64,000 nucleotides of DNA, from the NCBI GenBank assembly GCA_977017575.1, contig CDRNVI010000140.1, positions 62,001 through 126,000 on the forward strand. Reading direction: 5' to 3'. The notes beneath the pieces were generated by a model. The model saw only the letters and a program-made list of their open reading frames with translations. It was not told the DNA's origin and searched no databases. Each line of letters opens with the position of its first letter. Positions within the stretch are counted from its first letter, which is position 1. Source of the stretch: Paramoeba atlantica. Lineage: Eukaryota; Protista; Discosea. The position numbers and the translations under genes were made by a program. This document shows, piece by piece, positions 6,688 through 50,973 of this stretch.

Positions 6688-7380
6688 GAATGCAGTCCTT
6701 TCAGACAAAAAGAAATTCAACATTTTTCGAGTTCCTGATGAGAAGGTAACAGAAGACAATTTTCGACTTGTCACCTCTGAGTATATCCATCTTTTCTTGA
6801 AGGCAAAAGATACTGAATTGGACAAACTGGCTGTGAAGGAAGTGATGAAGGATTTTGGAAGAAGGTTTGAGAACCCAGCCTTTCAAGGAAAGTGGGACAA
6901 GTTGGCTGAGAAGGAAGAAATCTGGAATGAACTGATCCAAAATTTCTTAGAAGATATTGAGTTTACCCAAGTTGTAGTGAATCCTCAGGGTCTGAATAAA
7001 TTGTCTATGAGGAAAACAGACAAATACCAAAGGACAAAGAAAAGGCTGGGGAGGGGTCAAGAAAGATCCATTATCTGCTTCCTCATTATGGAATTTTTGT
7101 ATGGTGCCAACATGTCAATATTTGATTGGTTTTGTTTTAATTTAGAAGAAAAAGGGGTTTTTATTTCTAAATATGGAAGAGAAGTTTGAAAAAAAACCTT
7201 GAAATCAAAAAGACATTTGATTCTTTCAAGTGTATAAAAAATTGAATGTACAACTTTTAAAAAAGTGCTTTTTTAAAAACAAACTTCAGAGAACAATTTA
7301 ATTTTGAGCAAGCAAAAAGTAGAACCTTTCTCCTTCTTTTGTGGCATTGGTTTTGTTTTTGATTTGTTGAGAGAGTGAAG

Positions 7381-10209
7381 ATGAACAATTTGATTTTTGA
7401 GTTTGCCCAAGATGAGAATAGTCATGTTCATTTCAAGAAGGAAGAAAAAAGTCAAAAACAAAAACAAAAAAGTGAAAACCAAGGATCAGTCAAAAAAGTG
7501 GAGCAGGAACAAATGATCAAAACCCTTGAAAGAGACTTGTTTTGTGTTTTTTCAACATCAGGTTTCCCCAAGAACCCAGCAAATACCTTCTCATCTCATT
7601 TTTTCCAAGTTAAAGGGAAGATTGAGGCAATTCAAAACTTTCACAAAACTGCTTGTCATCTTGTTTATCAGAAGCTTGACACTCAAGTTCAATTGACTCT
7701 TAAAAACTTGCGATCTCAAAGTGACAGTTACTCATTTCCATTGAAAGAACAAATTTGTTTATTGAATATCAAAATTGAAAACAAAAAAAAGATGTGTTTT
7801 CTTCCTGAGATGTTGTCAGAAGAAGAAAAACAGTGTGAACTGCTTGCAATTGCTGAAGATGAAGAGTTAATTTTGTTTTTGAAGGACTTTCTCTTTGAAT
7901 TTGAAGCTGAAAATCGATATTTTGGAAGGTATTTGGAAGAAGAGTGAAGATTTTTGGAGAGTGGACAAAATATAAGCAAAAAAAATCAATTGCCTCCAAA
8001 CCCACCCCAAACCTTGAATGGACAAAAATGGTTGCTGAATATGATGAAAGCTTTTCGTGACCATGAAATGTTTGATGGAATGAAATTCCTTGAATTGTGG
8101 ATAAATTACATTGTTTTAAAGTGAAGCTTTTTTGAAACGAAATTTAAGACTGCAATGAATATTGTTGAAACTGTTCTTGATGAATTTGAGTCTGAAGTAA
8201 AAGAAGCTATTCAAATTCCACCACAACAGATGGCTTTTATTCTTGATAGCGCAAATATTTCTGTTAACAAGTATTGAATATTGGTAACTGCAGTTCAGCA
8301 ACATTTGAGTAGAACTAAATTTGAAGCCTTAAATTGTTTTTCTGAAGTGAAGGATGTTAAGAATGAAATTTAAAAACTTGAGCAGAAGGTCACCAACTTA
8401 TTTGAATTAAATGAAGATCATTCAAAGGAACAAAAAAATCAAGAAGTTGCTTGTTGTTGATTAGCTGTGGTGATTGACTGGATTTGTTGTTGTTTGGTAG
8501 GTGTTGATCAATGTAGTCCTGCAGCAATATGGAAACTTCATTTGGACACTCAAGAGATCTACAAGGGGAGAAACCAAGTTATTTTTTCTGTTCAACCTAT
8601 CGGTTTGCCTCTTTTCCATTTTACTTGTACTGCAACTAAAGGAAAAAAGAGGGGATTAAAAGAGAATCAGCAGTGGGCAAAAGATAGCTGCTATTTTGTT
8701 TTTTCTTTCCTTATCTTTCAAGGGAAAGAGGACATTTCTAGTTACTCAAAAGCAATTCCAAATCATGTTTTTTCAGATTTAATTCGATTTGAACATGATG
8801 GTTTACACTTTGAACTGCATCCTGAGAAGGTCAGTGGTACTTGGAAAAATCATGAATATTTACCAAAGTGCGATGAAGATGACTTGAAATGGATTGGAGG
8901 AATTTTATTTGAATGTAAAAGTGGTGACCAAAAGGAGTGGAGAGGGGGGCATCATTCACAAAGCAAAAGAAAATTTTCTTCTTTAACTAGTTCCCAAACA
9001 TGTTGTGGGGGGTGACATGGTGGTTTTCAGGAGGGAAAGTGGAAAGTGGTTGGAGGGATGCTAAGTGGCAATTGAAGAGATTTCAATGAAGACCTCAACT
9101 TGAAGATTAAGAATGTAGACCCAAAAGATTCTATTCTTTTATTGGATGCTGCTGGTGTAAGCTTAATGTACCATTATGTTTGTGGTTGGCAGATTCACAC
9201 TCTTCCACCAATCTTAGGCAATGAAGAAGACCCCACAATGTCACCAAAAGAATCTTTTTCGAGTACTCAATCTTGCAAACCTTTGACAAAAAAAAAATGT
9301 CACTGCTGTGTCTTTGTAATGTGTGGTGATCTCAAAAGTATGTGGGCACTGTTTGGATTTTGTTCTGGAATTTTTGGAAAAGAACAATATCCTTGTTGTA
9401 CAATTCAAAGGGTTGATCATTATGAAAAAGATGGTAAAATCGCATGGCAAGGGTACCAACCAGGTGATCCAATTCCTCTCTCTCCTTGTCTTCAATTCGT
9501 AATGTGTACTCTGCATGGTCTTCTTCAAATAATGGAATTTTCATTGGAGGTTCTCATTGCTGACTGTTGAAACAAAAATATTAAAACTGCTGGTAGCACC
9601 CCAACAATCACAATGGTCAAAAATGCATCTCAAATGAAACAAAAAGTTAATCATTCAAACTTTTGCTTGTATCATTCAATCAGTGGGAAAAAAGGAAGAG
9701 AGTTGGTTTCTGAGTTCAAAACTCAAATTCAAAATAAATTAAAGAAAAATAAGTGGGTGCCAGAAAAAGTATGCTCTTGGATTGGGGTTGGGGGGAGGTC
9801 TTAACAGAAATGCCATGATGAACTCAATCTCTTGCTTTTCTATCGATATTCTAACAAGAATACACAATTTCGAGAAGAGGAAAAATGGTTGGAAGGATTG
9901 AACAGCAAGTCATTGCAGGACAAATAGAAATCAAACTTTTGTAAGGAAAAGATATCAAAGAACTCATCTCATTCAATTTTGAGAATTGATTTAATAGCAA
10001 AGTGGTGGGCTGACTTTCAAGATTTCTCTTTACATTCATTCTCATCATTGAACTCACCTTTGTCTTCCTTACCCTCCTCATCTTCATCCTCTTCCTCTTC
10101 TTCTTTCTCTTCCTCTTCCTCTTCCTCTTCTTCTTCTTCACCTTCCTCTTTCCTTTTGTTGAAATCTCATCTAGAGGAAGAATATGAGAAAAGCTCCACA
10201 AAAGAATGA
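7381..10209 (+). pseudogene. DDE transposase, RAG1/Transib/Chapaev-like (degenerate)
   Basis: Largely one frame with TGA/TAA stops explicable as CGA/CAA transitions. Motifs: IPPQQMAFILDSANISVNKY*IL, WKLHLD (first Asp), FQGKED, CGDLKSMWALFG (second Asp), QYPCC, CTLHGLLQIME, SGKKGRELV. The third acidic residue is not securely placed (candidate LEGLN); the 3' end is approximate. Confidence 0.62.
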
Positions 10210-12329
10210 TTTGAGAAGAATCACTCATTGAAGACCAAATCATTGAAGTTGCTGGCCTTTGCGTTTTCTAAATGCAAAATTCCTTTTTGATTCCGAGTTG
10301 GTGATGATGGAAATTGGAAATTGGGGCAATACACAGGCACTCAAATGTGGCAAGTATTGGAGAATGTTGAAAGGATCTTTTGTTGCAATCCAAATCAACC
10401 ATCCACAATATTGTTGTGGGTTACCTTTTGAGAATGTTTTCAAATGCTGACAAGTAACCCCTCAAAAGGGTCAAATCGTGAAACAGTTGCTATTAATTTT
10501 GAAAAAAAAATTGGTTCTTAGAAGGAAAGTTTTGCAGATTGGGGAGAGATGGGTTCCACCTAGTGAATTTATTTCCATATTCTGGAAGCTCATGCAGCAG
10601 ATATGTATTGTCAGTTTAGGAATTTGTGACCTTGGGCAGCAGAAGCTGGGGAGCAGGTCCACTACTTGGATCAGATGCACTTCTATCAGAGTAACCAATG
10701 AGATTCTGCAAATCTGAACACTAAAGTCCTCACAACTGGACTTGTTTTCGATACAGCCATTCTTTAACAAATCAATATCAAACCTCTTTGGATATCCCAC
10801 AAGAAATTCAAGCAATCCAAATGAATTTAAATCGAAGAAATGAAGTGGTGACAAACCCAAAATTAATTCAAACTGCTCAGGAAGACCTTTTCCTCACATG
10901 GATGTATGATCTCAAAACTGAAATTTCTTTGGAAGAAGATAGTGATGAGAAATAAAATTTAAAAGTTTTTTATCAATTTCACTTCAACCAATTTTTTTAG
11001 AGGCTTTGGTTTGTGTGTTGCTTTCCTTTTATTTAGTTTTTCAGAGGATTTGATTTTTTTTTATGATTAACAAAAGATGCACCCATCATTTTCAACCCTA
11101 AATTGAGTGGCAAACTCATGTGAAAGTAATGACAAGTACAAATGGCCATTGCAGATTCTGGTGAATTTTTCCAAAGGATTTGAAGTTCAGAGAGACCAAC
11201 ACCACAATCACTTTCCCTCCAATTGAAACCCAAATATTGGCAAAATAACAAACCGAAGTTTGAAGCATCTTTATGGAGGAAGGTTCCACAGCCTCTTCCA
11301 ATCCAAATTTGTTGAGTACATTTCATTGGAAGTTGAACTCTTATATCTTTTCCTGTTTCCTTCCAAGTTGTTTGAAATTTCTCACACATTCCAATCTGTT
11401 CTGCAAAAAAGTTTGAATTCTTTTTTAATCCAGTTATTCACTTCATCAAGCAATACTCTCTTATCTCATATGCAATTAAAAGAGATGAAAGAATTTTCTT
11501 CATGTTGTCTGTTAGATGTTGAGTTTGAGCTCATTCCATTAAAGAGTTTTGAATTTTGTGAAGCCCAAAAGCTATGAGGTTCTACCCTCAAGCATTCTGC
11601 TTACATTTTGGTAGGAGAAGGTTCAAAGAGAGAAGCAAAGATTGAAGAATTGACATTTCATAAACCTCCTCTTCTGAAGCTACCTGGGAGCAAAAAAACA
11701 TGTCATTATGACCACTCTGAAACAAAATGTATAAATCCCTAGAAACAACATTTAAAAGGTTTTCCTCAACCAATAAATCCAAGTGCTTTAAAAACCCACT
11801 TAATCAATCTGAAAGTTGTTCCAAAATTTTGAGTCTGTTATTCAATTCTGGATAGATTCGAAGCCAACCTTTCCGATCCCATTTGTTATTTAACCCCCCT
11901 TCTGCCTCATCATTGAACCGAAGGATTTTCAATCCTTTCATCAAAAAAGCAAAATCAAAAGAAGTGAAGTCCTTCCTTTGAGCTTCGGAGGGAATCTTCT
12001 GGAAGTAACAATCCAAGTAGGAATGCATTCAACATGCAATCATGTGATCAGGTGTGAGAAGATGGCCTCGAAAACAAACCCCACTTCTTTCAAACTCAAA
12101 AACACCATGGTCCCCTTCACTTCCCTCAATTTTTAAATTCCAAATTTTCAATTGGATTTGCTTTGATAAGTTTTCCCAAAAAATGTTCAATTCTTGTCAA
12201 ATCTCTTAAGCGTTTTGAAAGCAACCCATTTTTCTCAAACTCTCCAAGTTTTTTGCCCTGCCTGCCTGCCTCACAAATTGTATTTGGGATATTTAGCCAC
12301 CACTCCTTTCTAAAATTTTTCAACAACAA
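9851..12329 (-). pseudogene. Unknown transposon-borne gene convergent with the transposase
   Basis: Chain of minus-strand ORFs (12126, 11804, 11588, 11033/11116, 10471, 10240, 9851) that is conserved in copy 2 (36134-38563); ends in a purine-rich low-complexity tract; no domain recognised. Confidence 0.5.
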
Positions 12330-12640
12330 AAAAATTCAAAAAGTTCCTCAAATTGAACTTTTTGAAGTGTTAAAATAAAAAAAGAGTATTTTTACTTCTC
12401 CACAAAAAAAAAAGTTTTTGTGAAAAAGGTTTTAAACCTTCAATAAAACTAAAAAATCCTTTTCAGAGGGAATTTAATTCATTTGAAATATTTAGCCACC
12501 ACTCCTTTCTAAAATTTTTCAACAATAAAAAAATTCAAAAAGTTCCTTAAATTGAACTTTTTGAAGTATTGAAATAAAAAAAGAGTATTTTTGCTTCTTT
12601 ACAAAAAAAAAGTTTTTTTGTGAAAAAGTTTTCAACCCTT
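12289..12640. repeat. Tandem duplication (~199-bp period) between divergent genes of the transposon, each unit with a 12-bp-arm palindrome
   Basis: ATATTTAGCCACCACTCC... at 12289 and 12488; TTCAAAAAGTTC-N8-GAACTTTTTGAA at 12335-12366; also duplicated in copy 2 (~38570-38900). Confidence 0.85.
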
Positions 12641-12683
12641 TCTTCCCTCAGTTTTCCACTTCTATTTTCTTTTCCTTTCCACA

Positions 12684-13850
12684 ATGAAGTGTTTATATTG
12701 CAATTTTAAGATTCAAAACAGTTCAGTTCATTATTGTTTCAAATGCAATGTCCTTTTTCATAGAAGTTGTTTGTTGAAAGAAAAGACTTGTCCAGCAAAA
12801 TGTCTCCTCCAACTGTTTCTCCAGAATCAAAACCCAGACTTCATCAACTTGAAACCCACAACCCCAACACAATTTGTCTTTGAGAAGAAAAGTGTTCATT
12901 ATTGACACTTTTTTTCTGAGGAGGAGGATTATTCATTTTCCAGAATCAATTTTGGTTCAGTGGACAGGATCAAATGAGACACATTTTCCCTTTCCCAAGT
13001 GGACTGGGAAGCAGGGTATTGGAATCAATTGCACATTATTAAGAAATCTAATGAGGAGGTGATGGATTTCTCTTATCAGGGCAATCAGTCTCTTGAACCA
13101 AAAACCTTTTTGGGGTTCTATATTGGGCACTTGACTGATTCTGAGGATAGAGATCAAAACCATCACCAAATGGTCTTGCAAAATAAATGGAAGATTGATG
13201 ATTCCTCAATTGGAAACAAAACTCGATTTGTGAATCATTCACACCTTCTTAATGTGGAATTTCGAATGGGGGGGTTGGCGCCTGTAGTTTAGTCGTAAAT
13301 TTGACTATGTCCAACCCTGGGGGGGCGAGTTCAAATCCCAGTTTTTCGATATTATGGAAAATTTTTCTGGTGCTGTAAAGTGATTTGATTGGAGTGAGGA
13401 GCTCTTGAAGAAGTGTGAAAATCAGAACAGGTTACATCTCAACCCTGTCTGCTAAAAAGTTGAGGATAAATTCCCTTGGAAGGAGCTTTGGATTATTCTC
13501 CCTTCTGATGTGCATCCTCCAGCCTGAACTTGCAGAAGTTCTAAAGTTCAGCATAAAGACCGACTGAACTAAGCTGAAGTTTAAAACTTCACCTCTTGTT
13601 AGAGGTTAAAAACAAACATAATTTAATGTAATTCAAATGGCTTAGATTAAGAACTACTAATTGAATAAAGTCTGCCTCAAAAAAAAAAAAAAAGAATTTC
13701 GAATGGGGTTTCTTGATTGTTGCTCTGGTTGGTTGCTCAGTTTAATTACAAAATCAAAAATTTAAAAAACACCAAACTTATTGCCAATTATCTCATTATA
13801 GTCTCCAATATTTCCAAGGGGTTTGATTATTGTGATTCTTGCTTGACAAG
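12684..13850 (+). pseudogene. Zn-finger + SET + post-SET protein carried by the transposon; interrupted by a SINE
   Basis: N-terminus CLYC...CFKC...FHRSC...CPAKC. SET motifs FLGFYIGHL and IDDSSIGNKTRFVNHSH..NVEF. After SINE removal the frame continues LITKSKI.KNTKLIANY; copy 2 adds DCNTAFCPGYIG (post-SET-like). Confidence 0.78.
13272..13693 (+). mobile_element. tRNA-derived SINE family B, full length
   Basis: A-box-like TAGTTTAGTCG, B-box GAGTTCAAATCC, AATAAA followed by poly(A), 15-bp TSD GAATTTCGAATGGGG at 13257-13271 and 13694-13708. Confidence 0.9.
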
Positions 13851-14335
13851 AACCAACTTCTTATGAAACATTTTCAACTCCACAAACAATAATTCAACTC
13901 CCACTTCCTCAATCTTTTCAAACCCAACCAAATTACAATTTCTGATCAGTTCCACAAAACCAAACTTCTTATCAAATACTTTCTATTCAATCATCCTAAC
14001 AATTCTAACAAAATTTCAATCCTTCACCCCAAATCTGATTTCAACAAAATGACAATTCACAAATTTATGGATTGGCTCAACAACCAATGTATCAATCAAC
14101 AGCAGTGGCAAACCCACAACCACTTCAAAATCCCTAACTATCAATGGTGTGTGGCAATGACACATCCTCACAAACCCAAGTATTTTTTTTTTGGATTTGA
14201 ATATTTCTCTTTTTCAATTAATACTTTTTATTAATTCATTTTTTTCAAAATTCAGATGAATCAAATTCTTTTACATCAAAGGCAGATGCAGCAAGAACTT
14301 AACAAACTGAAAAAGTTAGTTTTTTCATTTACTAA

Positions 14336-15183
14336 TTAAATTTTTTTCCCTTTTTTTTTCAACATTTTACTAACAATGGAAATAGATCCAAAAAATAGTT
14401 TTATTTTTTTCAAAATTTTTTTGTAAAATAAATTTAATTTTGTTTCAAAATAATTCAACAAATAATTTCCTTCAAGTGCAACAAAAGCCAGATGCATTTG
14501 TAACTTCAATGATTCCACAGCATTTGAATTGACTTTTTTTTTTTGTAAATTTTAAAATCAACTCAGATTCACACTCAATTTTCATCAGTTTGAATAACAT
14601 TAGATTCAATCCAATGATAAAAAACAATATTTACCTTCTCATTTAAAAAAATGTTGCTACAAGAACTTTGTGAAAGAATCTTTTTGGTTCACCATTCAGA
14701 ACAGTTCAAAAAGCAAGAATCCAGTTTTTTTAAATCATCTTAAGAACAGATTCGAGCACATTGTCCTGATTCATCAACTTGAAACTTCACTTTTTTGAAT
14801 TTTTTCAATGGTTTCCAAAAAATCTTACAGAAAATTTGTTTTGGCAATGGTAGCTGAATCCAAAAAGATTAAATTCATTTCTTCAAGGCAAAATCAAGTC
14901 ACTTTTCAAATTCAGGAAGAATCATGGAGTTCACCCACCACTTTGTCTCATTCAAATTGAAACTCTCTTCATCAACAGGAATGGTCTCTGTCAACAGTGG
15001 CTGCTGTGTTTTTTCTACTCCTCTTTTTTGGCGTTTTCTTCACTTCTCAACGGTTTTTTGTTTTCTCTTTTTTGTTTGTTGAATTTTCTCAGTAATGAAA
15101 TCAATCTCCATGATTTCATCTAATGAGATTGAAGGTTCTTTTGGTGTTCGTTTTGGCAGTTTCTCATTTCCTTTCATTGCCAT
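14336..15183 (-). pseudogene. Fourth transposon-borne gene (unknown, Lys/Arg-rich N-terminus) starting next to the right TIR
   Basis: Minus-strand frame MAMKGNEKLPKRTPKEPSISLDEIMEIDFITEKIQQTKKRKQK... with TGA stops at probable CGA codons; colinear in copy 2 (~41190-42037). Confidence 0.45.
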
Positions 15184-15907
15184 AATCAAAAATGGAGAAC
15201 AAAATGAAAAAAAGTCCAATTTATTTTTTAATCAATCAAATATTGACACATTGGCACCATACAAAAATTCTATAATGTTTGTTGGGGTAGTCATTCCCCC
15301 AAAAAATGTTTCATTCTGGATGAATTGAAACAGGAAGCTGCTGACTGCCTTGGAAGGGAATACTGTTTTCTTTATGGAAGATGTGACCATAAGAGCCTGG
15401 AGTGCCTTTGGTTAAGTGTTGCAAAATTCATAACAGAAAGAAAGATTAAACTTGTAGGAGATCATCCCTGGAAGGAAGCTGTGACTTGTTATGGTGAGTC
15501 TGCAGCTCAAAAATACAATTGTATAGAATCTGCTGACTGGAATAAGAAACTTCCAGGGAAAAGAGGAAGAGAAGTCCCTCAAGAGAAGAAGAAAGAAAAG
15601 AGGAGAAAATTGGAGAATACTCTTCAAGATTTGATGACTGGGAAAATGACTCTGGATGAGCTCAGAAATCAAGAAAATGGTTTGTCAATTTTTTCTAAGA
15701 GTAAAAAGGAATTTACTCAGAATATTGGGCAGCAGGACCACAAAGTGACAGTCAAGATGGGTGAAGAAGGCTTCACAATCTCTATTGGTGACTTAGTTAG
15801 AGACTTAAATCCTGAAATTTGCCAAATAAAAGACAAATTATTCACTATTCCTTGCATGGTTAATAATACCAAAAAAGCACAAAATAGTTGCTTTTGCAAG
15901 CCTGGCT

Positions 15908-34898: not shown

Positions 34899-37800
34899 CA
34901 TTACAGAATTTTTGTATGGTGCCAATGTGTCAATATTTGATTGGTTTTATTTTAATTTAGAAGAAAAAAGGGTTTTTATTTCTAAATATGGAAGAAAAGT
35001 TTGAAAAAAGCCTTGAAATCAAAAAAACATTTGATTCTTTAAAGTACATAAAAAATTGAATGTACAACTTTTAAAAAAGTGTTTTTTTAAATACAAACTT
35101 CAAAGAACAATTTAATTTTGAGCAAGCAAAAAGTGGAACCTTTCTCCTTCTTTTGTGGCATTGGTTTTGTTTTTGATTTGTTGAGAGAGTGAAGATGAAC
35201 AATTTAATTTTTGAGTTTGCTCAAGAGAATAGTCATGTTCATTTCAAGAAGGAAGAAAAAAGTTGAAAACAAAAATGAAAAAGTGAAAACCAAGGATCAG
35301 CTGAAAAAGTGGAGCAGGAACAAATGATCAAAACCCTCAAAAGAGACTTGTTTTGTGATTTTTCAACATTAGGTTTCCTCAAGAACCCAGCAAATATCTT
35401 CTCATCTCATTTTTTCCAAGTTAAGGGAAAGATTGAGGTGATTCACAACTTTCACAAAACTGCTTGTCATCTTGTTTATCAGGAGCTCAACACTTAAGTT
35501 CAATTGACTCTTAAAAACTTGCAATCTCAAAGTGACAGTTACTTATCTCCATTGAAAGAACAAATTTATTTATTGAATATCGAAATTAAAAACAAAAAAA
35601 AGATATATTCTCTTCCTGGGATGTTGTCAAAAGAAGAAAAACAGTGTGAACTACTTGCAATTGCTGAAGACAAAGAGTCAATTTCATTTTTGAAGGACTT
35701 TCTCTTTGAATTTAAAGTTGAAAATCAATATTTTGGAAGGTATTTGGAAGAAAAGCAAAGATTTTTAGAGAGTGGATAAAATATAAGCAAAAAGGATCAA
35801 TTGCCTCCAAACCCACCCCAAACCTTGAATGGACAAAAATGGTTGCTGAATATGATGAAAGCTTTTCATAGCCATGAAATGTTTGATGGAATGAAATTCC
35901 TTGAATTGTGGATAAATTATGTCATTTTAAAGTGAGGCTTTTTTGAAACAAAATTTGAGACTGCAATGAATATTGTTGAAACTGTTCTCAATAAATTTGC
36001 CAAAACTCAAATTCAAAACAAATTGAAGGAAAATAAGTGGGTGCCAGAAAAGTATGTTCTCAGATTGGGGTTGAGGGGAGGTCTCAACAGAAATGCCATG
36101 ATGAACTTAATTTTTTGCTTTTCTATTGATATTTTAACAAGAATACACAATTTTAAGAAGAAGAAAAATGGTTGGAAGGATTGAACAGTGAGTCATTGCA
36201 GGACAAATGGAAATTAAACTTTTGTAAAAAAAAGATACCAAAGAACTCAGCTCATTTAATTTTGAGAATTGATTTAATGACAAAGTGGTGGGCTGACTTT
36301 CAAGATTTCTCTTCATGTTCATCCTCATCATTGAACTCACCTTCATCTTCCTTATCCTTCTCATCTTCATTCTCTTCCTCTTCCTCTTTTTCTTCCTCTT
36401 TGTCTTCTTCTTCTTCACCTTCCTCTTTCCTTTTGTTGAAATCTCATCTGGAGGAAGAATATAAGAAAAGCTCCACAAAAGAACAATTTAAGAAGAATCA
36501 CTCATTGAAGCCCAAATCATTGAAGTTGCTGGTCTTTGCATTTTCTAAATACAAAATTCCTTTTCGATTCTGAGTTGGTGATGATGGAAATTGGAAATTA
36601 GGGTGATACACAGGCACTCAAATGCAACAAATATTGGAGAATGTTGAAAGAATCTTTTGTTGCAATCCAAATCAATCATCCATAATATTATTGTAGGTTA
36701 CCTTTTGAGAATGTTTTCAAATGCTGATAAGTAACCCCCTAAAAAGGTCAAATTGTGAAGCAGTCACCATTAATTTTGAAAAAAAAATTGGTTCTTAGAA
36801 GGAAAGCTTCACAGATTGGGGAGGGGAGATGGGTTCCACCTGGTGAATTTATTTCCACATTCTAGAAGCTCACACAGTAGATATGTATTGTTAGTTTAGG
36901 AATTTGTGACCTTGGGCAGCAGAAGCTGGGGAGCAGGTCCACTACTTGGATTGTATGCACTTCCATCAGAGTAGTCAACAAGGTTCTGCAAATCTGAACA
37001 CTAAAGTCCTCACAACTGGACTTTGTTTTTAATATAGCCATTTTTTAGCAAATCAATATCAAACCTCTTTGGATATTCCACAAGAAATTTGAGCAACCCA
37101 AACAAATTTAAATCAAAGAAGTGAAGTGGTGATGGACCCAAAATTGATTTGAACTGCTTAAGAAGACTTTTTCCTCCCATGAATGTATGATCTTGAAACT
37201 GAAATTTCTTTGAAAAAAGATGGTGATGAGAAATAAAATTTATAAGTTTTTTATTAATTTCACTTCAACCAATTTTTTTGAGAGCTTTGGTTTGTGTGTT
37301 GCTTTCCTTTTATTTAGTTTTTCAGAGGATTTGATTTTTTTTTATGATTAACAAAAGACACACCCATCATTTTCAACCCTAAATCAAGTGGCAAACTCAT
37401 GTGAAAGTAATGACAAGCATGAATGGCCATTGCAGATTTTGGTGAATTTTTCCAAAGGATTTGAAGTTTGGGGAGACCAACACCACAATCACTTTCCCCT
37501 CAATTAAAACCCAAATATTGGCAAAATGACAAACCAAAGTTTGAAGCATCTTTGTGGAGGAGGGTTCCATGGCCTCCTCCAATCCAAATTTGTTGAGTAC
37601 ATTTCATTAGAAGTTGAACTCTCATATCTTTTCCTGTTTCCTTTCAAGCTGTTTGAAATTTCTCACACATTCCAATCTGTTCCACAAAAAAGTTTGAATT
37701 CTTTTTTAATCCAGTTATCCACTTCACCAAGCAATGCTCTCCTATCTCATATGCAATTAAAAGAGATGAAAGAATTTTCTTTATGTCATCTGTTAGATGT

Positions 37801-40800
37801 TGAGTTTGAGCCCATTTCATTAAAAAGTTTTGAATTTTGTGAAGCCCAAGAGCTATGAGGTTCCACCCTCAAGCATTCTGCTTACATTTTGGTAGGAGGA
37901 GGTTCAAAGAGAGAAGCAAAGATTGAAGAATTGACATTTTATAAACCTCCTCTTCTGAAGCTACCTGAGAGCAAAAAAACATATCATTATGACCACTCTG
38001 AAACAAAATGGATAAATCTGCAGAAATGATATTTAAAAGGTTTTCCTCAACCAATAAATTCAAGTGCTTTAAAAACCCACCTGATTGATCTGAAAGTTGT
38101 TCTAAAATTTTGGGTCTGTCATTCAATTCTGGATAGATTCAAAGCCAACCTTTCTGATTCCATTTGTTATTTAACCCCCCTTCTAACTCATTGTTGAACT
38201 GAAGGATTTTCAATCCTTTTGTCAAAAAAGCAAAATCAAAGGAGGTGAAGACCTTCCTTTGAGCTTCAGAGGGAACCTCTTGGAAGTAATGATCCAAGTA
38301 GGATGCATTCAACATGCAATCATGTGATCAGGTGCAAGAGGACAGCCTTGAAAACAAACCCCACTTCCTCCAAACTCAAGAACACCATGGTTCCCTTCAC
38401 TTCCCTCAATTTTTAAATCCCAAATTTTTGATTGGATTTGCTTTGATAAGTTTTCCCAAGAAATGTTCAATTCTTGTAAAATCTCACAAGTGTTTTGAAA
38501 GTGGTCCATTTTTCTCAAACTCCTCAAGTTTTTTGCCTTGCCTGCCTGCTCCACAAATTGCATTTGAGGTATTTAGCCACCACTCCTTTTTAAAATTTTT
38601 CAATAATAAAAAAATTCAAAAAGTTTCTCAAATTGAACTTTTTGAGGTATTGAAATGAAAAAAGAGTATTTTTGCTTCCCCACAAAAAAAAAAGTTTTTG
38701 TGGAAAAAGTTTTAAACCTTTAATAAAACTAAAAAATCCTTTTCAGAGTTTAATTCATTTGAAATATTTAGCCACCACTTCTTTTTAAAATTTTTCAATA
38801 ATAAAAAAATTCAAAAAGTTCCTCAAATTGAACTTTTTGAAGTGTTGAAATGAAAAAAGAGTAGTTTTGCTTCTCCACAAAAAAAAGTTTTTTTGTGAAA
38901 AAGATCTTTCAACCCTTTCTTCCTTCAGTTTTCCACTTCTATTTTCTTTTTCTTTTCACAATGAAGTGTTTATATTGCAATTCTGAGATTCAAAACAGTT
39001 TAGTTCATTATTGAGGTTTCTTGATTGTTGCTCTGGTTGGTTGCTCAGTTTAATTACAAAATCAAAAATTGAAAAAAACACCAAACTCATTGCCAATTAT
39101 CTCATTGAAGTCTTTGATATTTCCAAGGAGTTCAATTATTTTGATTGCAACACAGCTTTTTGTCCAGGTTACATTGGATACTCAAATTATTGTGGTGGTT
39201 CCTATATGGATTTTTTGAAGCAAACATCATGGTTGGCATGAGTCTTCCCCACTTTGAAACCACAATAAAAGTGGATACAAACTCACCCCAAATTGACCAT
39301 GAGAAAAAAAAATATTTCAACCTTAGTGAACAAACAAAAAAGGAGGTTACTTTTTTTTCATCAGTTTCAGCTCAGGAATTGGTGAGTCTTCAACTTACCA
39401 CCCTCAGTTCTGGATTTGGGAAGAGGTCCTTGAAGAAGGTTCCTTTTGGTATTTGAATCCCAGAAAATTATAAAATTTGCAAAGCAACAAAACTTTCCCT
39501 CCCCTTTTGAGGCCTCTTATCTTCGATGAAAAGAAACCACTTGTTGGTCAAGTTGAAACCCTCTGTAGTTAGGGGAAACAGGGATATTCCTGCTTGCTCC
39601 AACTCTGCTTACCCTTTCCAAATCAAGGGGATCTTTTTGTTGGAAGTAATTCTTGTAGTGAACCATGGGATCCATCAACATCACTAACTTTGTGCCCACT
39701 TTTATTTCTAAAGGATTATTTGCTGGTTCTGAGTAAGAAAGAACTTTTTGATTCATTGCTGAATGAAGTTTTCATTTTTATTCAAGAAGATAATTTCCCT
39801 GCAACCAGCCAAGTGATTTTAGAGAAGTTGAACCCCTCCAAACCACTCAATCCAAGGGATGTTTTTGAACTTGTTCACTCAATGCCATTGATTAAAGAAA
39901 AGATTCAATTGAACAGAGTGGATTCTCTTTTTCCAAGTTCTGATTACCTCTTCATCAAGGCCTTGAACACTGACTGTCATCTCCCTTGGCAAAAATCAAC
40001 CAACCAAAAAGCCTCAAAGGAGTTTCAACAAGGAAAGGAAATGCCAAAGCACAAGAGGAAGGAAAAATCAGCCTGAGAAACCTCTCCTCTTCCCTCAATG
40101 ATCCCCAAGCAACCTCAGACTGCACATCCTCAAAATAATAAGAAACAAACTCCAAAACCCTCCCTGTGTCCCACATAACACAACCATTCAGAAGATTACA
40201 TTTTCAATTCCTTCCCAAATGAAAAAAAGCAAAAAAAAGCCAACATGAATAAGGAAACTGATCACTCATTACCAGCAACCTCATTTCCATGAGGTTCCCC
40301 ACTTCCCCAATCACCAGAACTTCAACAATCTCCTTCACCAACTGAAACTAACCAATCCTTACAACCTGAAAAACCTGTCTCCAGTCAATTAATACTCCAC
40401 TCTCCTTCAACAAAAATGAAACAATTACAATTAAACACCAATCCACTAACTTTTGAGCTAATGATTTCAAATGTACCAACACTTGACCACATTTAACAAT
40501 TCCACTCTAATTCCACTTCCTCTGATCCAATAGATTGAAACAAATCTATAATTCAACAACTGCCACTTCAGTCTTTTCAATCAAATTCCACCCTCATTCC
40601 ATTCAAAGAAGGAGCAACAAACCCCTATCTTTTTATTCAAAATCAACCACCACCAATACCTCAGGTCATTCAAATTCAATCCAACCCATTTTTTCCTTGA
40701 CAAGAACCAACTTCTTATGAAACATTTTCAACTCCACAAACAATAATTCAACTTCCACTTCTTCAATCTTTTCAAACCCAACCAAATTACAATTTCTGAC

Positions 40801-42131
40801 CAGTTCCACAAAACTGAACTTCCTATCAAATACTTTCTATTCAATCACCCCAACAATTCCAACAAAATTTCAATCCTTCACCCCAAATCTGATTTCAACA
40901 AAATGACAATTCACAAATTTATGGATTGGCTCAACAACCAATGTATCAATCAACAGCAGTGGCAAACCCACAACCACTTCAAAATCCCTAACTATCAATG
41001 GTGTGTGGCAATGACACATCCTCACAAACCCAAGTATTTTTTTTTTGGATTTGAATATTTCTCTTTTTCAATTAATACTTTTTATTAATTCATTTTTTTC
41101 AAAATTCAAATGAATCAAATTCTTTTACATCAAAGGCAGATGCAGCAAGAACTTAACAAACTGAAAAAGTTAGTTTTTTCATTTACTAATTAAATTTTTT
41201 TCCCTTTTTTTTTCAACATTTTACTAATAATGGAAATAGATCCAAAAAATAGTTTTATTTTTTTCAAAATTTTTTTGTAAAATAAATTTAATTTTGTTTC
41301 AAAATAATTCAACAAATAATTTCCTTCAAGTGCAACAAAAGCCAGATGCATTTGTAACTTCAATGATTCCACAGCATTTGAATTGACTTTTTTTTTTTGT
41401 AAATTTTAAAATCAACTCAGATTCACACTCAATTTTCATCAGTTTGAATAACATTAGATTCAATCCAATGATAAAAAATGATATTTACCTTCTCATTTAA
41501 AAAAATGTTGCTACAAGAACTTTGTGAAAGAATCTTTTTGGTTCACCATTCAGAACAGTTCAAAAAGCAAGAATTCAGTTTTTTTAAATCATCTTAAGAA
41601 CAGATTCGAGCACATTGTCCTGATTCATCAACTTGAAACTTCACTTTTTTGAATTTTTTCAATGGTTCCCAAAAAATCTTACAGAAAATTTGTTTTGGCA
41701 ATGGTAGCTGAATCCAAAAAGATTAAATTCATTTCTTCAAGGCAAAATCAAGTCACTTTTCAAATTCAAGAAGAATCATGGAGTTCACCCATCACTTTGT
41801 CTTATTCAAATTGAAACTCTCTTCATCAACAGGAATGGTCTCCATCAGCAGTGGCTGCTATGTTTTTTCCACTCCTCTTTTTCAGTGTTTTCTTTGCTTC
41901 TCAACAGTTTTTTGTTTCCTCTTTTTCATTTGTTGAATTTTCTCAGTAATGAAATCAATCTTTATGATTTCATCTAATGAGATTGGAGGTTCTTTTGGTG
42001 TTCATTTTGGCAGTTTCTCATTTCCTTTCATTGCTATAATCAAAAATGGAAAACAAAACGAAAAAAAGTCTGATTTATTTTTTAATCAATCAAATATTGA
42101 CATGTTAGCACCATACAAAAATTCTGTAATG
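34899..42131 (+). mobile_element. Large TIR DNA transposon, copy 2 (transposase core and SET core deleted)
   Basis: TIRs at 34899-34943 and 42087-42131; colinear with copy 1 apart from deletions; interrupts gypsy B Pol just after the protease. Confidence 0.9.
38961..41240 (+). pseudogene. SET-gene remnant in transposon copy 2: retains the post-SET region and a long C-terminal region missing from copy 1
   Basis: MKCLYCN start fused to FLDCCSGWLLSLITKSKIEKNTKLIANY...DCNTAFCPGYIG, followed by ORFs 39145 and 39594 and a Q/P/S/T/N-rich tail. Confidence 0.6.
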
Positions 42132-48278: not shown

Positions 48279-50973
48279 TGATAAACAATGTAGAAGTTGT
48301 AATCCAACAGAAAATCCAACCAGTCCAAAATCATAAACTTTGTACTTGAATTCAAATACACAAGCACCTTATGATCCATCTCCACTCTAAACTTCCACCC
48401 AAAAACATATGAACAGAACTTCTTAATTGCAAAAATAATTGCTAAAAGTTCCTTCTTTGGTGCAGGATAATTTCATTGTTCCACTTGAAGAGTTTTCAAT
48501 GCAAATACAATATAATGTTTCTTGTCATTTGCATCAACTTGGTACAATACTGCACCAACTGCATATTGTGATGCATCAGTTGCAATTCAAAATTCTCAAT
48601 CCCAATCTGGCTGAGACAAAACTGGAGCATTCAAGATAACCTCTTTGAAAAAATCAAAAGACTTGTTTTGCTCCTCACCCCACACCTTACCAAGACACCT
48701 CATCTTTCACAACTTATCCAATGGAGCCACAATAGTCACATAATTTGGGACAAAATCCCTCAAAAAATTCAGAAAACCAAGAAGACTTTCAACTTGCTTT
48801 CCAGTCTGAGGTTTCACCATCTTCTGAGCCATTTTTTTCTTGAATGAATCAATCTCTTGAGTAAAACCATCAATCAAATGACCCATGAATTGAATCCTCT
48901 TCATGCAGAATTTTGATTTCTTCATCTTAATCTGAAATCCTGCTCTTGTCAACTTTTGGATGACTCTGTGAGCTTCATTAGAATGATTTTCCAGCTCTTT
49001 AGAAAAAACTAGAAAATTATCCAAATAACTTGCAGCTTCATCTGAAACACCAATAACTTGTTTTCCTTGAACTTGAAAATGCATAACTGCACCTTTCAGC
49101 CCAAATGGCATCCTCACATACACATACTGACTCTTATCAGGTGCCAGAAAACCCAACAATGGTTGACTCTTTTCTGACACCACAATATGATGATAAGCCT
49201 CTGTGAGATTGATTTCAGAAGAAGGGTTGGCACCCATAGTTTAGTTATACATTCAACTATGTCCAACCCTGGGGGGGGGCAAGTTTAAATCCCAGTTTTT
49301 CAATATTATAGAAAATTTTTCTGGTGCTGTAGAGTGATTTGATTGGAGTGAGGAGCTTTTGAAGAAGTGTGAAAATTGGAACAGGTTACATCTCAGCCCT
49401 GTCTGCTAAAAAGTTGAGGATAAATTCCCTTGGAAGGAGCTTTGGATTATTCTCCCTTTTAATGTGCATCCCCCAGCCTGAACTTGCAGAAGTTCTAAAG
49501 TTCAGCATAAAGACCAACTGAACTAAGCTGAAGTTTAAAACTTCACCTCTCGTTAGAGGTTAAAAACAAATATAATTTAATGTAATTCAAATGGCTTAGA
49601 TTAAGAACTACTAATTGAATAAAGTTTGTCTCAAAAAGAAAAAAAAAAAATTGATTTCAGTAAAATATTTCACACCCTGAACACATTTAAACAATTCTGC
49701 AGAAGCTGGCAAAATATTATTTGGATCCTTTGTTAAAGCATTTACCACTCTCAAATCCAAACAAACTCTAATATCATCAGGATCCACCTGACCACCAGAC
49801 TTCTTAGGGACTGCTAAAAGAGGGGAATTCCACAAGTTCTTCTTGTCCTTGTCCCACTTCTTAACAAATCCTTTTTTCACCCACTCATTCACTCACTCCA
49901 TAACCTTTCCTTTCAATTTCTCAGGGATTGGATACTGTGGCACAAACTTCAGAGTGTCTTCTTTTAAAGAAATTTTAAACTCAGAACCTGGGAGCACACA
50001 ATGAGAATTTTCCTATAATCTCTGGTTTTCCTTCAAAGCATCATTAATACTTTGAATAAACAACTTGACCAACTCATCATCCCATTGCTCCTCTTGACTC
50101 TGATCCTCATCATCATCCAACCACTGCTGATCATCAACTTGGACTTGACAAGCAATACTTGGGAAAACCACTTCAATTCCTTGAACAGTCACCCCCAACC
50201 ACTTTGCATCTTCATGAGGAATCAACAAACAATTACCAGTCAAGGCTGGATTTCTCCAAACCTTAACTACAGTTGCATAAAACAAAGTATATGCAGCAAC
50301 CATCTTAAAACAAGTAAGTGTTTGTACTGCAGCACCAATGCCACCAAATTGATGCTTCCCTTGACCTTCTTCACCTTCCAACTGATTCTATAATCTTGAA
50401 TCAGCCATTGTCACTGTAACTGCTGAATCATGAATAGTCCAAATATCCAGCAATTTCAAATCACCCCATGTAATTGGAACATACAATTTCATTGAATCTG
50501 GAGGTGGTGAAATTGGGCCAAAAGCATTCTCCTCACTCACACTGAGAGGTGAATTAACATCTCTCAAAAATTGTTTATACATCTTGTCTTCTTTCATTGA
50601 AGATGAAGCACTGGCATCAGCACTGGCTCCTTCCTCTGGTAGCAGAAAACAACCATCTTTGAGAGTTGAGCATTTAGAACAGTCTTTCTTCTTGTGACCA
50701 GGTTGCAAACATTTGATACACAAATTTTTCCCTTTGATCTCTTTCCAAGAAATTTTTTTCTCCTTCACACTCTTGTTCCCATTCTCATTTGAAGATGGAT
50801 TTACAACTGATTAAACTTGATGCACATGAGGAAAAGACCAAAAAAAAGTTAAGTCCTCTATGGAATAGTATGGAAATAGAGACAAGAACAGAGAACAAGA
50901 ACAAAGAACAAAGAAAGAACAAGCTTGGTTCAATGTCTTTTATCAAATGCATTCCAAAAGCCAAAAAGAACAA
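48279..50973 (-). mobile_element. Ty3/gypsy element C remnant (Gag knuckle, protease, RT, RNase H)
   Basis: CIKCLQPGHKKKDC; HDSAVT; WNSPLLAVPKK, VCLDLRVVN, MPFGLKGA, YLDNFLVFS; RNase H APVLSQPDW and KFRVEMDHKVL; LTRs not found. Confidence 0.85.
49224..49649 (+). mobile_element. SINE family B inserted in gypsy C RT
   Basis: Full-length match to the 13272 copy; imperfect TSD ATTGATTTCAG(A/T)A(G/A)AA; removal restores KYF(T/S)EINLTEAY. Confidence 0.9.

Follow-up and report, generated by a model that had tools for sequence, protein, structure and literature searches.

We analyzed a gene remnant in a 64,000-nucleotide stretch of the Paramoeba atlantica genome (contig CDRNVI010000140.1, positions 62,001 to 126,000; hereafter the window, whose own positions are used throughout) and conclude, with a probability of roughly 0.6, that positions 12684-14179 hold a dead copy of a SET accessory gene of a cut-and-paste DNA transposon of this amoeba. 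The remnant lies on the + strand and is read in one frame from its ATG. An earlier note on this DNA, made from the letters alone, had proposed a transposon-encoded protein with a zinc finger, a SET domain and a post-SET motif, ending at 13850. That architecture recurs across copies and relatives; the end has to be moved, since the reading frame continues to ~14179.

The SET gene lies inside the terminal inverted repeats (TIRs) of a multi-copy DNA transposon as a separate open reading frame (ORF). We take it to be transposon-borne, as had been supposed, because the element ends in TIRs of ~45 bp and its borders are identical at different loci. The gene has its own ATG and is not a fusion of the SETMAR type, a further claim that held: an opposite-strand ORF stands between it and the transposase frame. 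The homology of its predicted product to SET domains is firm, and the copies taken together show a complete predicted gene inside the DNA transposon, comprising a finger, a divergent SET domain, a post-SET CxCx4C motif, a middle region and a tail. The window copy is dead, with five disabling lesions: two TGA codons, an insertion resembling a short interspersed element (SINE), a stop with a frameshift and a deletion of ~1.5 kb.

The SET gene and its relatives

The remnant belongs to the first of two element copies in the window (copies 1 and 2). In what follows, C-numbers are contigs of the window's 45.7-Mb genome assembly, and L026, L051 and L063 are contigs of the public European Nucleotide Archive (ENA) assembly ERZ24900291. 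The gene in copy 1 is laid out as follows.

12684..12803, +: ATG and Cys/His finger MKCLYCNFKIQNSSVHYCFKCNVLFHRSCLLKEKTCPAKC, spaced C-x2-C-x11-C-x2-C-x4-H-x2-C-x6-C-x3-C
12903..12905, +: in-frame TGA at codon 74, CAA in the other compared copies
12975..12977, +: in-frame TGA at codon 98, CAA or TAA in other copies, R in L051 and P0019
12978..13271, +: N-terminal SET part, to ...GNKTRFVNHSHLLNVEFRMG; SET is its top Pfam family, its PDB matches are all SET methyltransferases, and it scores 62 bits against the profile of its relatives
13272..13693, +: SINE-like retroposon, poly(A)-tailed, inside the SET domain, with a 15-bp duplication GAATTTCGAATGGGG at 13257-13271 and 13694-13708
13709..13837, +: C-terminal SET remnant, FLDCCSGWLLSLITKSKI..., with TAA at 13763-13765 and then a 1-nt loss (compared with copy 2 and L063)
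13838..14179, +: tail remnant, downstream of a 1543-bp deletion; the window from 13836 onward aligns to copy 2 from 40691

Searches were made with natural contiguous copies (P0007, P0008 and P0017, from the same ENA assembly) and with separate pieces. For the 97-residue piece encoded at 12981-13271, the best Pfam family is SET (PF00856; E = 0.003), and SET is likewise the top family for P0007 and P0008. At 18.4 bits the piece stays below the curated threshold of 22.4 bits, so that the profile search named in the earlier note recovers SET as the leading family while the score itself is sub-threshold; firm homology comes through relatives. The 14 PDB matches listed for the piece up to E = 10 are all SET lysine methyltransferases (EHMT1, ASH1L, SETD2; E = 0.19-1.9), none individually significant; EHMT1 is the best match, and its printed alignments are in register. 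Among 1.84 billion representative proteins, five matched at E <= 0.001: one fragment of the same element and four metagenomic proteins (P0003-P0006; E = 8e-7 to 1.5e-4, 31-44% identity), which come from JGI metagenomes 3300060904, 3300045300 and 3300061568. With Pfam scores of 29.6-39.6 bits, all four of these relatives exceed the SET cut-off.

The profile made from the four relatives alone gave 62 bits for the window piece and 91 bits for L063, whose one stop was read as X and whose alignment spans the linker through the ...ANY tyrosine; the best of 200 shuffles reached 8.4 bits. The N half and the C half align separately to P0003 (E = 9e-10 and 2e-13); the C-terminal stretch of L063 does so at 35% identity, spanning NHSH, the ...NY/DY tyrosine, CxCx4C and Y..F...TS..RVS. 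Taken alone, the C-terminal SET piece found no SET match in the Pfam and PDB searches, and its homology was seen only against the family profile and P0003. That family profile, A3, combines the four relatives with three element pieces. Against solved structures it matched ASH1L at 5e-12 and also MLL1, NSD1, EHMT2, SUV39H2 and EZH2, the best matches falling at 5e-12 to ~1e-9; the ASH1L alignments shown extend through the post-SET region and the EZH rows stop before it. These scores lie too close together for a class or substrate to be assigned.

The relatives and the window gene have peculiarities in common: TF[LI]RFYVG, GNE.RF.NHSH, PNVE.R, EL..[DN]Y, C.C....CC..IG and Y..F...TS...RVS. The His of NHSH stands where most SET proteins carry Cys (NHSC). 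When metagenomes were scanned with the profile of the relatives, nothing beyond generic SET genes (25-32% identity) came back, and a viral scan returned two giant-virus SET genes, both without the NHSH signature. By these comparisons the predicted protein is shown to belong to a rare SET subfamily otherwise seen only in the four metagenomic proteins.

The motifs on which the earlier note had relied are present in the window: the Cys/His finger at 12684-12803, FLGFYIGHL at 13107-13133 and GNKTRFVNHS at 13212-13241. GNKTRFVNHSH (13212-13244) contains the RFxNHS motif and opens the GNKTRFVNHSHLLNVEFRMG stretch at 13212-13271; other copies read GNET.FVNHSH. The proposed match to canonical SET motifs stood for NHS and for the post-SET cysteines; of EL..DY, the Tyr and Leu are kept and Glu is replaced by Lys. 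The post-SET motif CxCx4C reads CDCNTAFC or CDCNAAFC in L051, L063, P0007 and P0011-P0013, its counterpart in the alignment to P0003 is CKCKAPFC, and in the family-profile alignment it falls on the ASH1L post-SET. His instead of Cys follows NHS, at the position of the fourth ligand; copy 2 reads FDCNTAFC. The ligand order of the N-terminal finger fits the C4HC3 order of PHD/RING cross-brace fingers, with a short last loop (x6 then x3), and its Pfam matches are all sub-threshold (Prok-RING_1, E = 0.0064, 16.9 bits against a threshold of 29.1; PHD_2, 12.6 bits). A linker separates the finger from the SET domain.

P0017 spans the ATG, finger and linker in one frame and enters SET, and P0007 and P0008 run uninterrupted through SET, NHSH, SET-C and CDCNTAFC. 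L063, which is absent from the window's genome, is open for 572 codons save one TGA at the Arg of GNETRF. The ORF start is the same in P0017 and L063 as in copy 1. The first ~570 codons are thus shown to form a single predicted exon, because P0017, P0007, P0008 and L063 read through them. In C155 the frame is open for 683 codons after a deletion junction, to the equivalent of ~14196. Where the long frame ends in the window we observed a 76-nt GT...AG interval (14180-14255), followed in frame by MNQILLHQRQMQQELNKLKK and another GT; these may be further small 3' exons and introns, with the gene perhaps extending towards 15100.

The middle region is a conserved stretch of ~250 residues belonging to no known family, and the tail is P/Q/S/T-rich and of low complexity with basic patches; Pfam returned nothing on either. 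In a low-complexity-filtered comparison, the ORF downstream of P0003 matched the middle region at 30% identity over 207 aa (E = 5e-6), and P0003 also begins with a Cys-rich segment. The region of ~200-250 residues after the post-SET motif (...DLFVRSNSCGEPWDPSTSL...LLDSLLNEVFVFIRED...; L024:1038-1595 / L049:1708-3375) is the part common to the P0003-adjacent ORF. The SET-less C155 ORF (683 aa), used as the query of a word search, retrieved nothing but one other element copy.

The SINE-like retroposon that splits the SET domain is ~420 bp long and has at least 157 candidate copies in the genome. We consider it young because these copies are numerous and the best 40 scored are 94-100% identical to the insert. 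ARAGORN found no tRNA in it, and Rfam no tRNA, 5S, 7SL or other RNA head. A second SINE-like stretch lies in the window at 49273-49572. SINE-free sites occur at the same position in C178, L051 and L063, and the contiguous proteins P0007 and P0008 agree with the SINE-excised join, which bears out the repair made in the earlier note. The sequence read there beyond the insert, KSKIEKNTKLIANY, is legible in copy 2 and other copies; copy 1 itself has a TAA and a frameshift at this point and reads KSKI*KTPNLLPII, with one A missing from the A-run after 13763-13765. The extension taken from copy 2, DCNTAFCPGYIG, is read at 39143-39178. Behind this stop and frameshift sits the C-terminal tyrosine motif of copy 1, and the 1543-bp deletion (relative to copy 2; junction 13837/13838) severs the post-SET motif after 'CD', so that most of it is gone.

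The transposon, its copies and their decay

The element and its parts in the window are the following.

7084..15277, +: copy 1 of the TIR DNA transposon carrying the SET gene, 8.2 kb, with borders common to the compared copies
7084..7128, +: left TIR, ~45 bp, a reverse-complement match to the right end
15233..15277, -: right TIR, ~45 bp
7375..9570, +: decayed putative transposase frame, three ORFs in one frame
12271..12648, +: two ~199-bp tandem repeats directly upstream of the SET gene ATG (repeat family D3; in copy 2 at 38551-38924)
34899..42131, +: copy 2, a deletion derivative without transposase core and SET core
38961..39011, +: copy 2, first 17 codons of the SET gene, then the deletion junction
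39014..39238, +: copy 2, C-terminal SET and post-SET (KSKIEKNTKLIANY at 39059-39100, DCNTAFCPGYIG at 39143-39178)

Similarity between copies stops at 7081-7084 and at 15277-15281 wherever a compared copy reaches that end (copy 2, C155, C209, L026, L051); both ends were compared for copies 1 and 2, C155 and C209, and one end each for L026 and L051. The flanking DNA is unlike between element copies, placing them at separate loci. The TIR sequence starts 5'-CATTAYGGAATTTTTGTATGGTGCC..., and the termini read 5'-CATTAYGG...CCRTAATG-3'. A single T borders CATTAC...GTAATG on both sides (7083/7084 and 15277/15278; 34898/34899 and 42131/42132). This could be read either as a 1-bp target duplication or as an asymmetric end, and would be unusual for CACTA/Transib-like elements, whose duplications are 2-5 bp (PMC12730594). 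Copy 1 sits within a nest of other repeats.

At the DNA level no other place in the genome has segment 8189-9716, the putative transposase core of copy 1, and the proteins of its two ORFs have no second place in the genome either; we found no intact transposase of this element family in the assembly. The transposase pieces had no Pfam match and no PDB sequence match, and a language model gave Transposase_21 (CACTA) and RAG1 RNase-H/Zn clusters as look-alikes, which we treat as a lead only. A C-terminal transposase ORF at L022:6659-7546 (+), corresponding to ~9980-10870 of the window, carries FHILEAH (H-x4-H) with a Glu 20 residues further on, a spacing that, judged by eye, resembles the RAG1 ZnH2 histidines and last catalytic Glu. 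The CMCT clade is described as having CA..TG termini, 2-5 bp target duplications and a DDE transposase with C(2)C and H(3-4)H motifs (PMC12730594). From its CA..TG termini, its look-alikes and H-x4-H...E, the element probably belongs to this CACTA/Transib-like group, again as a lead rather than a result.

Between the transposase frame and the SET gene lies the opposite-strand ORF (332-398 aa), which matches no Pfam family; the SET gene begins ~650 bp downstream of it. The ~199-bp tandem repeats stand upstream of the ATG in every copy looked at, with a similar array apparently in L026; they might serve as a promoter or as binding sites for the transposase.

About nine copies or fragments of the element are present in the genome, all of them broken. 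The SET N-core survives only in copy 1. A single deletion, from codon 17 to GFLDCC, is common to C155, C209, C154, C178:177965, copy 2 and L026; in copy 2, read from 38961, codon 17 is followed directly by GFLDCC...KSKIEKNTKLIANY...FDCNTAFCPGYIG. Four of these derivatives were compared over the transposase core, and in all four (C155, C209, copy 2 and L026) 8189-9716 is missing too, wholly or for the most part. C155:41290-48555 (L022+L024) and C209:9260-16530 (L023+L025) moved recently, because they are 99.6% identical and have different flanks. Such a doubly deleted derivative presumably moved with transposase supplied in trans. The C178 copy keeps the finger and domain fragments. At L002 (C178:143254-145133) we observed a complex rearrangement, with a duplicated post-SET fragment after the linker and two or three SINE-like inserts; of the SET N-part, just the final ~16 codons are kept there.

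The heavy C-to-T decay claimed in the earlier note is evident in the copies themselves. Of the private substitutions in the window copies, 76-82% are C>T or G>A changes, and the observed/expected ratio of CpG is 0.16 in copy 1 and 0.01 in copy 2, compared with 0.60 for the youngest copies. Nonsense hot spots lie at CGA codons. Codon 98 is TGA, TAA or CAA depending on the copy and Arg in two others, which fits a decayed CGA codon, and at codon 181 (13224) copy 1 has CGA, three copies have TGA and one has CAA. Independent changes of CGA to TGA, TAA or CAA were seen in several copies (window 12903, 12975 and 13224; L051, L062, L063, L064). These losses fit deamination at methylated CpG.

Possible roles of the SET protein

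The ancestral protein would have been an S-adenosylmethionine (SAM)-dependent protein-lysine methyltransferase with chromatin as its target, histone H3 being the likeliest substrate. Its closest solved relatives (ASH1L, MLL1, NSD1, EHMT, SUV39) do not discriminate activating from repressive marks. The element may have carried the gene as a means of changing the chromatin of its own copies; counter-silencing, suggested by analogy, would be the most attractive guess for this cargo, and we regard the anti-silencing idea as plausible on that footing. In this genome the function is gone, given the lesions of the window copy, the lack of an intact copy and the SET-less state of the youngest movers.

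Several observations weigh against reading the remnant as a former functional accessory gene. All element sequences fall under the Pfam SET threshold (18.4 bits for the window, 16.9 for P0007 and 15.5 for P0008). EL..[DN]Y reads TKLIANY or TKLVANY in all copies, keeping Tyr and Leu and changing Glu to Lys, and in place of the N-terminal GxG-type SAM motif the element has DFS(Y) and the relatives G-L/C/V-F(Y). With DFS and KL.ANY in every copy, catalytic competence is uncertain even for the ancestor. An AlphaFold2 model of P0008 from a 15-row alignment was unusable, with a mean predicted local distance difference test score (pLDDT) of 34. The ratio of nonsynonymous to synonymous substitution rates (dN/dS) is ~1.1 for SET-C and post-SET between L063 and C155, from small numbers. 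Three ENA-assembly copies have a common TGA at codon 181, which could reflect transposition after the death of the gene or parallel CpG decay. The deletion of the SET core, common to five genome copies and L026, is out of frame in C155, and the most recently mobile copies had already lost that core. Because SET-less copies moved, the SET protein was not needed in cis; these derivatives are also transposase-less, and therefore their movement bears on a need in cis, not in trans.

A different origin would make the gene a passenger, a host-type SET gene picked up whole that never served the element and then decayed and was deleted. The loss of the SET core from the most successful and youngest copies, its survival in one genomic copy only, the dN/dS of ~1.1 and the sub-threshold, altered motifs are all what such a history would leave. 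We nevertheless judge it unlikely, though to be taken seriously, since the gene has its own start, is complete and matches distant relatives in architecture, and L063 is still open for 572 codons bar one stop. The deletion derivatives have lost the transposase core as well, and loss in non-autonomous copies says little about autonomous ones. Nor is there a host paralogue in the genome: the element gene resembles none of the 19 SET-profile loci (best tblastn E = 0.97), which is why we do not regard it as a recent fragment of a host SET gene. The earlier note had coupled that origin with a dN/dS near 1. The lack of host kinship speaks against it, and the substitution ratios divide, with ~1.1 for SET-C/post-SET and 0.35 for the middle region; the latter was obtained between two element lineages, from small numbers and with a SET-less copy as one partner. 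In aligning copy 1 with L063 only the first 181 codons were used. Most of the 19 host loci form near-identical pairs on different contigs. L030-L045 pair with identical scores (for example C6:178282/C55:86223 and C20:335168/C63:100703), and either two haplotypes or a duplicated genome seem to be represented in the assembly.

Were the protein an enzyme, its mark might also have been repressive, such as H3K9 methylation, or have guided integration, serving self-restraint, heterochromatin targeting or competition with other elements. The close solved relatives include EHMT1/2 and SUV39H2, EHMT1 is the best match of the window piece, and the element lies in a nest of repeats; yet ASH1L, MLL1 and NSD1 score as well or better, and by eye there is no SUV39/EHMT-type pre-SET Cys cluster upstream of SET, leaving this option improbable. 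It is very improbable, in our estimation, that the product was a SET-like pseudoenzyme, an inactive scaffold or reader whose finger, SET fold and tail bound chromatin or transposase. The change of the GxG-type motif to DFS, the E-to-K change in EL..DY, sub-threshold Pfam scores in all element copies and a constraint that lies in the middle region rather than in SET-C would suit it, but NHS, the ...ANY tyrosine and CxCx4C are kept, the relative P0005 also reads ...TNY yet passes Pfam, and many of the deviant residues would be, to go by their codons, products expected of G-to-A decay. Chance resemblance, in which short motifs in AT-rich junk mimic a SET domain, could appeal to the sub-threshold Pfam score of the window sequence and to the C-terminal piece without a SET match of its own. 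Both halves, however, are significantly and collinearly homologous to proteins that pass the SET threshold, and shuffles reached at most 8.4 bits against 91. The E-values of the relatives, the 91-bit profile score and the pairwise E-values of 9e-10 and 2e-13 refute it, and its probability is negligible.

A broader proposal builds on the accessory-gene reading. CACTA/Transib-like transposons of the amoeba lineage would carry different epigenetic enzymes as counter-silencing cargo, with TET/JBP dioxygenases in sister families and, in this family, an NHSH SET methyltransferase depositing an activating or methylation-blocking mark (H3K4/H3K36 type) on the element's own copies. We think this quite unlikely as a whole. 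If it were true, loss of the SET gene would accompany heavy C-to-T decay in SET-less and dead copies. The window copy itself is an ordinary dead pseudogene; the SET-bearing, SET-deleted and nearly intact copies together offer a concrete comparison set for the anti-silencing idea.

Comparison with known systems

Transposons with chromatin or DNA-mark enzymes are natural experiments in resisting or exploiting host silencing. SET histone methyltransferase genes have been taken up by several transposon lineages, including HarbingerS and Phytophthora MuDR families (Kojima & Jurka 2014, Repbase Reports, cited in PMC12730594). As far as that citation describes them, these resemble the present element in being cut-and-paste DNA transposons with a separate SET cargo gene beside the transposase. 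Going by the same description, the element differs in its CA...TG termini and in transposase look-alikes of CACTA/Transib rather than Harbinger or Mutator type (both leads here), in its amoeba host, and in a SET gene whose subfamily, marked by NHSH, is rare and whose predicted product has a finger at its N terminus and a long tail. The TET/JBP-carrying transposons KDZ, Plavaka, ESTA and others in fungi belong to the CACTA/Transib-like clade, for which CA..TG termini are typical (PMC12730594). The likeness lies in a DNA transposon of that group (a lead in our case) with an enzyme that edits epigenetic marks; the cargo here would be a protein methyltransferase rather than a DNA-base dioxygenase, and we saw no TET gene in the element.

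Among cellular enzymes, ASH1L, NSD and MLL (SET2 and SET1 classes) and EHMT/SUV39 have in common with the element protein a SET core with NHS, a C-terminal Tyr motif and a post-SET CxCx4C, whereas the element has NHSH instead of NHSC, has no AWS or pre-SET Cys cluster, and has DFS and KL..NY in place of GxG and EL..DY. SETMAR, the primate SET-mariner fusion, likewise joins a SET domain and a transposase in one locus, but it is a host gene fused to a domesticated transposase and the SET gene described here is a separate ORF inside a mobile element. VANC of the Arabidopsis VANDAL elements (PMC5735166, cited in PMC12730594) offers a parallel, being an accessory protein with a proposed role against the silencing of the element that encodes it. 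In the account given there VANC is not a SET enzyme and its anti-silencing is demonstrated, whereas for the element SET gene that role is conjecture. Viral SET proteins, such as chlorovirus vSET and those of giant viruses, are also encoded by a mobile or parasitic genome; the two matches in giant-virus metagenome-assembled genomes read GNEMR[FY]IND, not NHSH, are without a CxCx4C post-SET and show no special kinship. SET-carrying transposons are thus already known, and what is new here is the amoeba host, the rare SET subfamily and, probably, a different transposon lineage, which together add a protist example to these systems.

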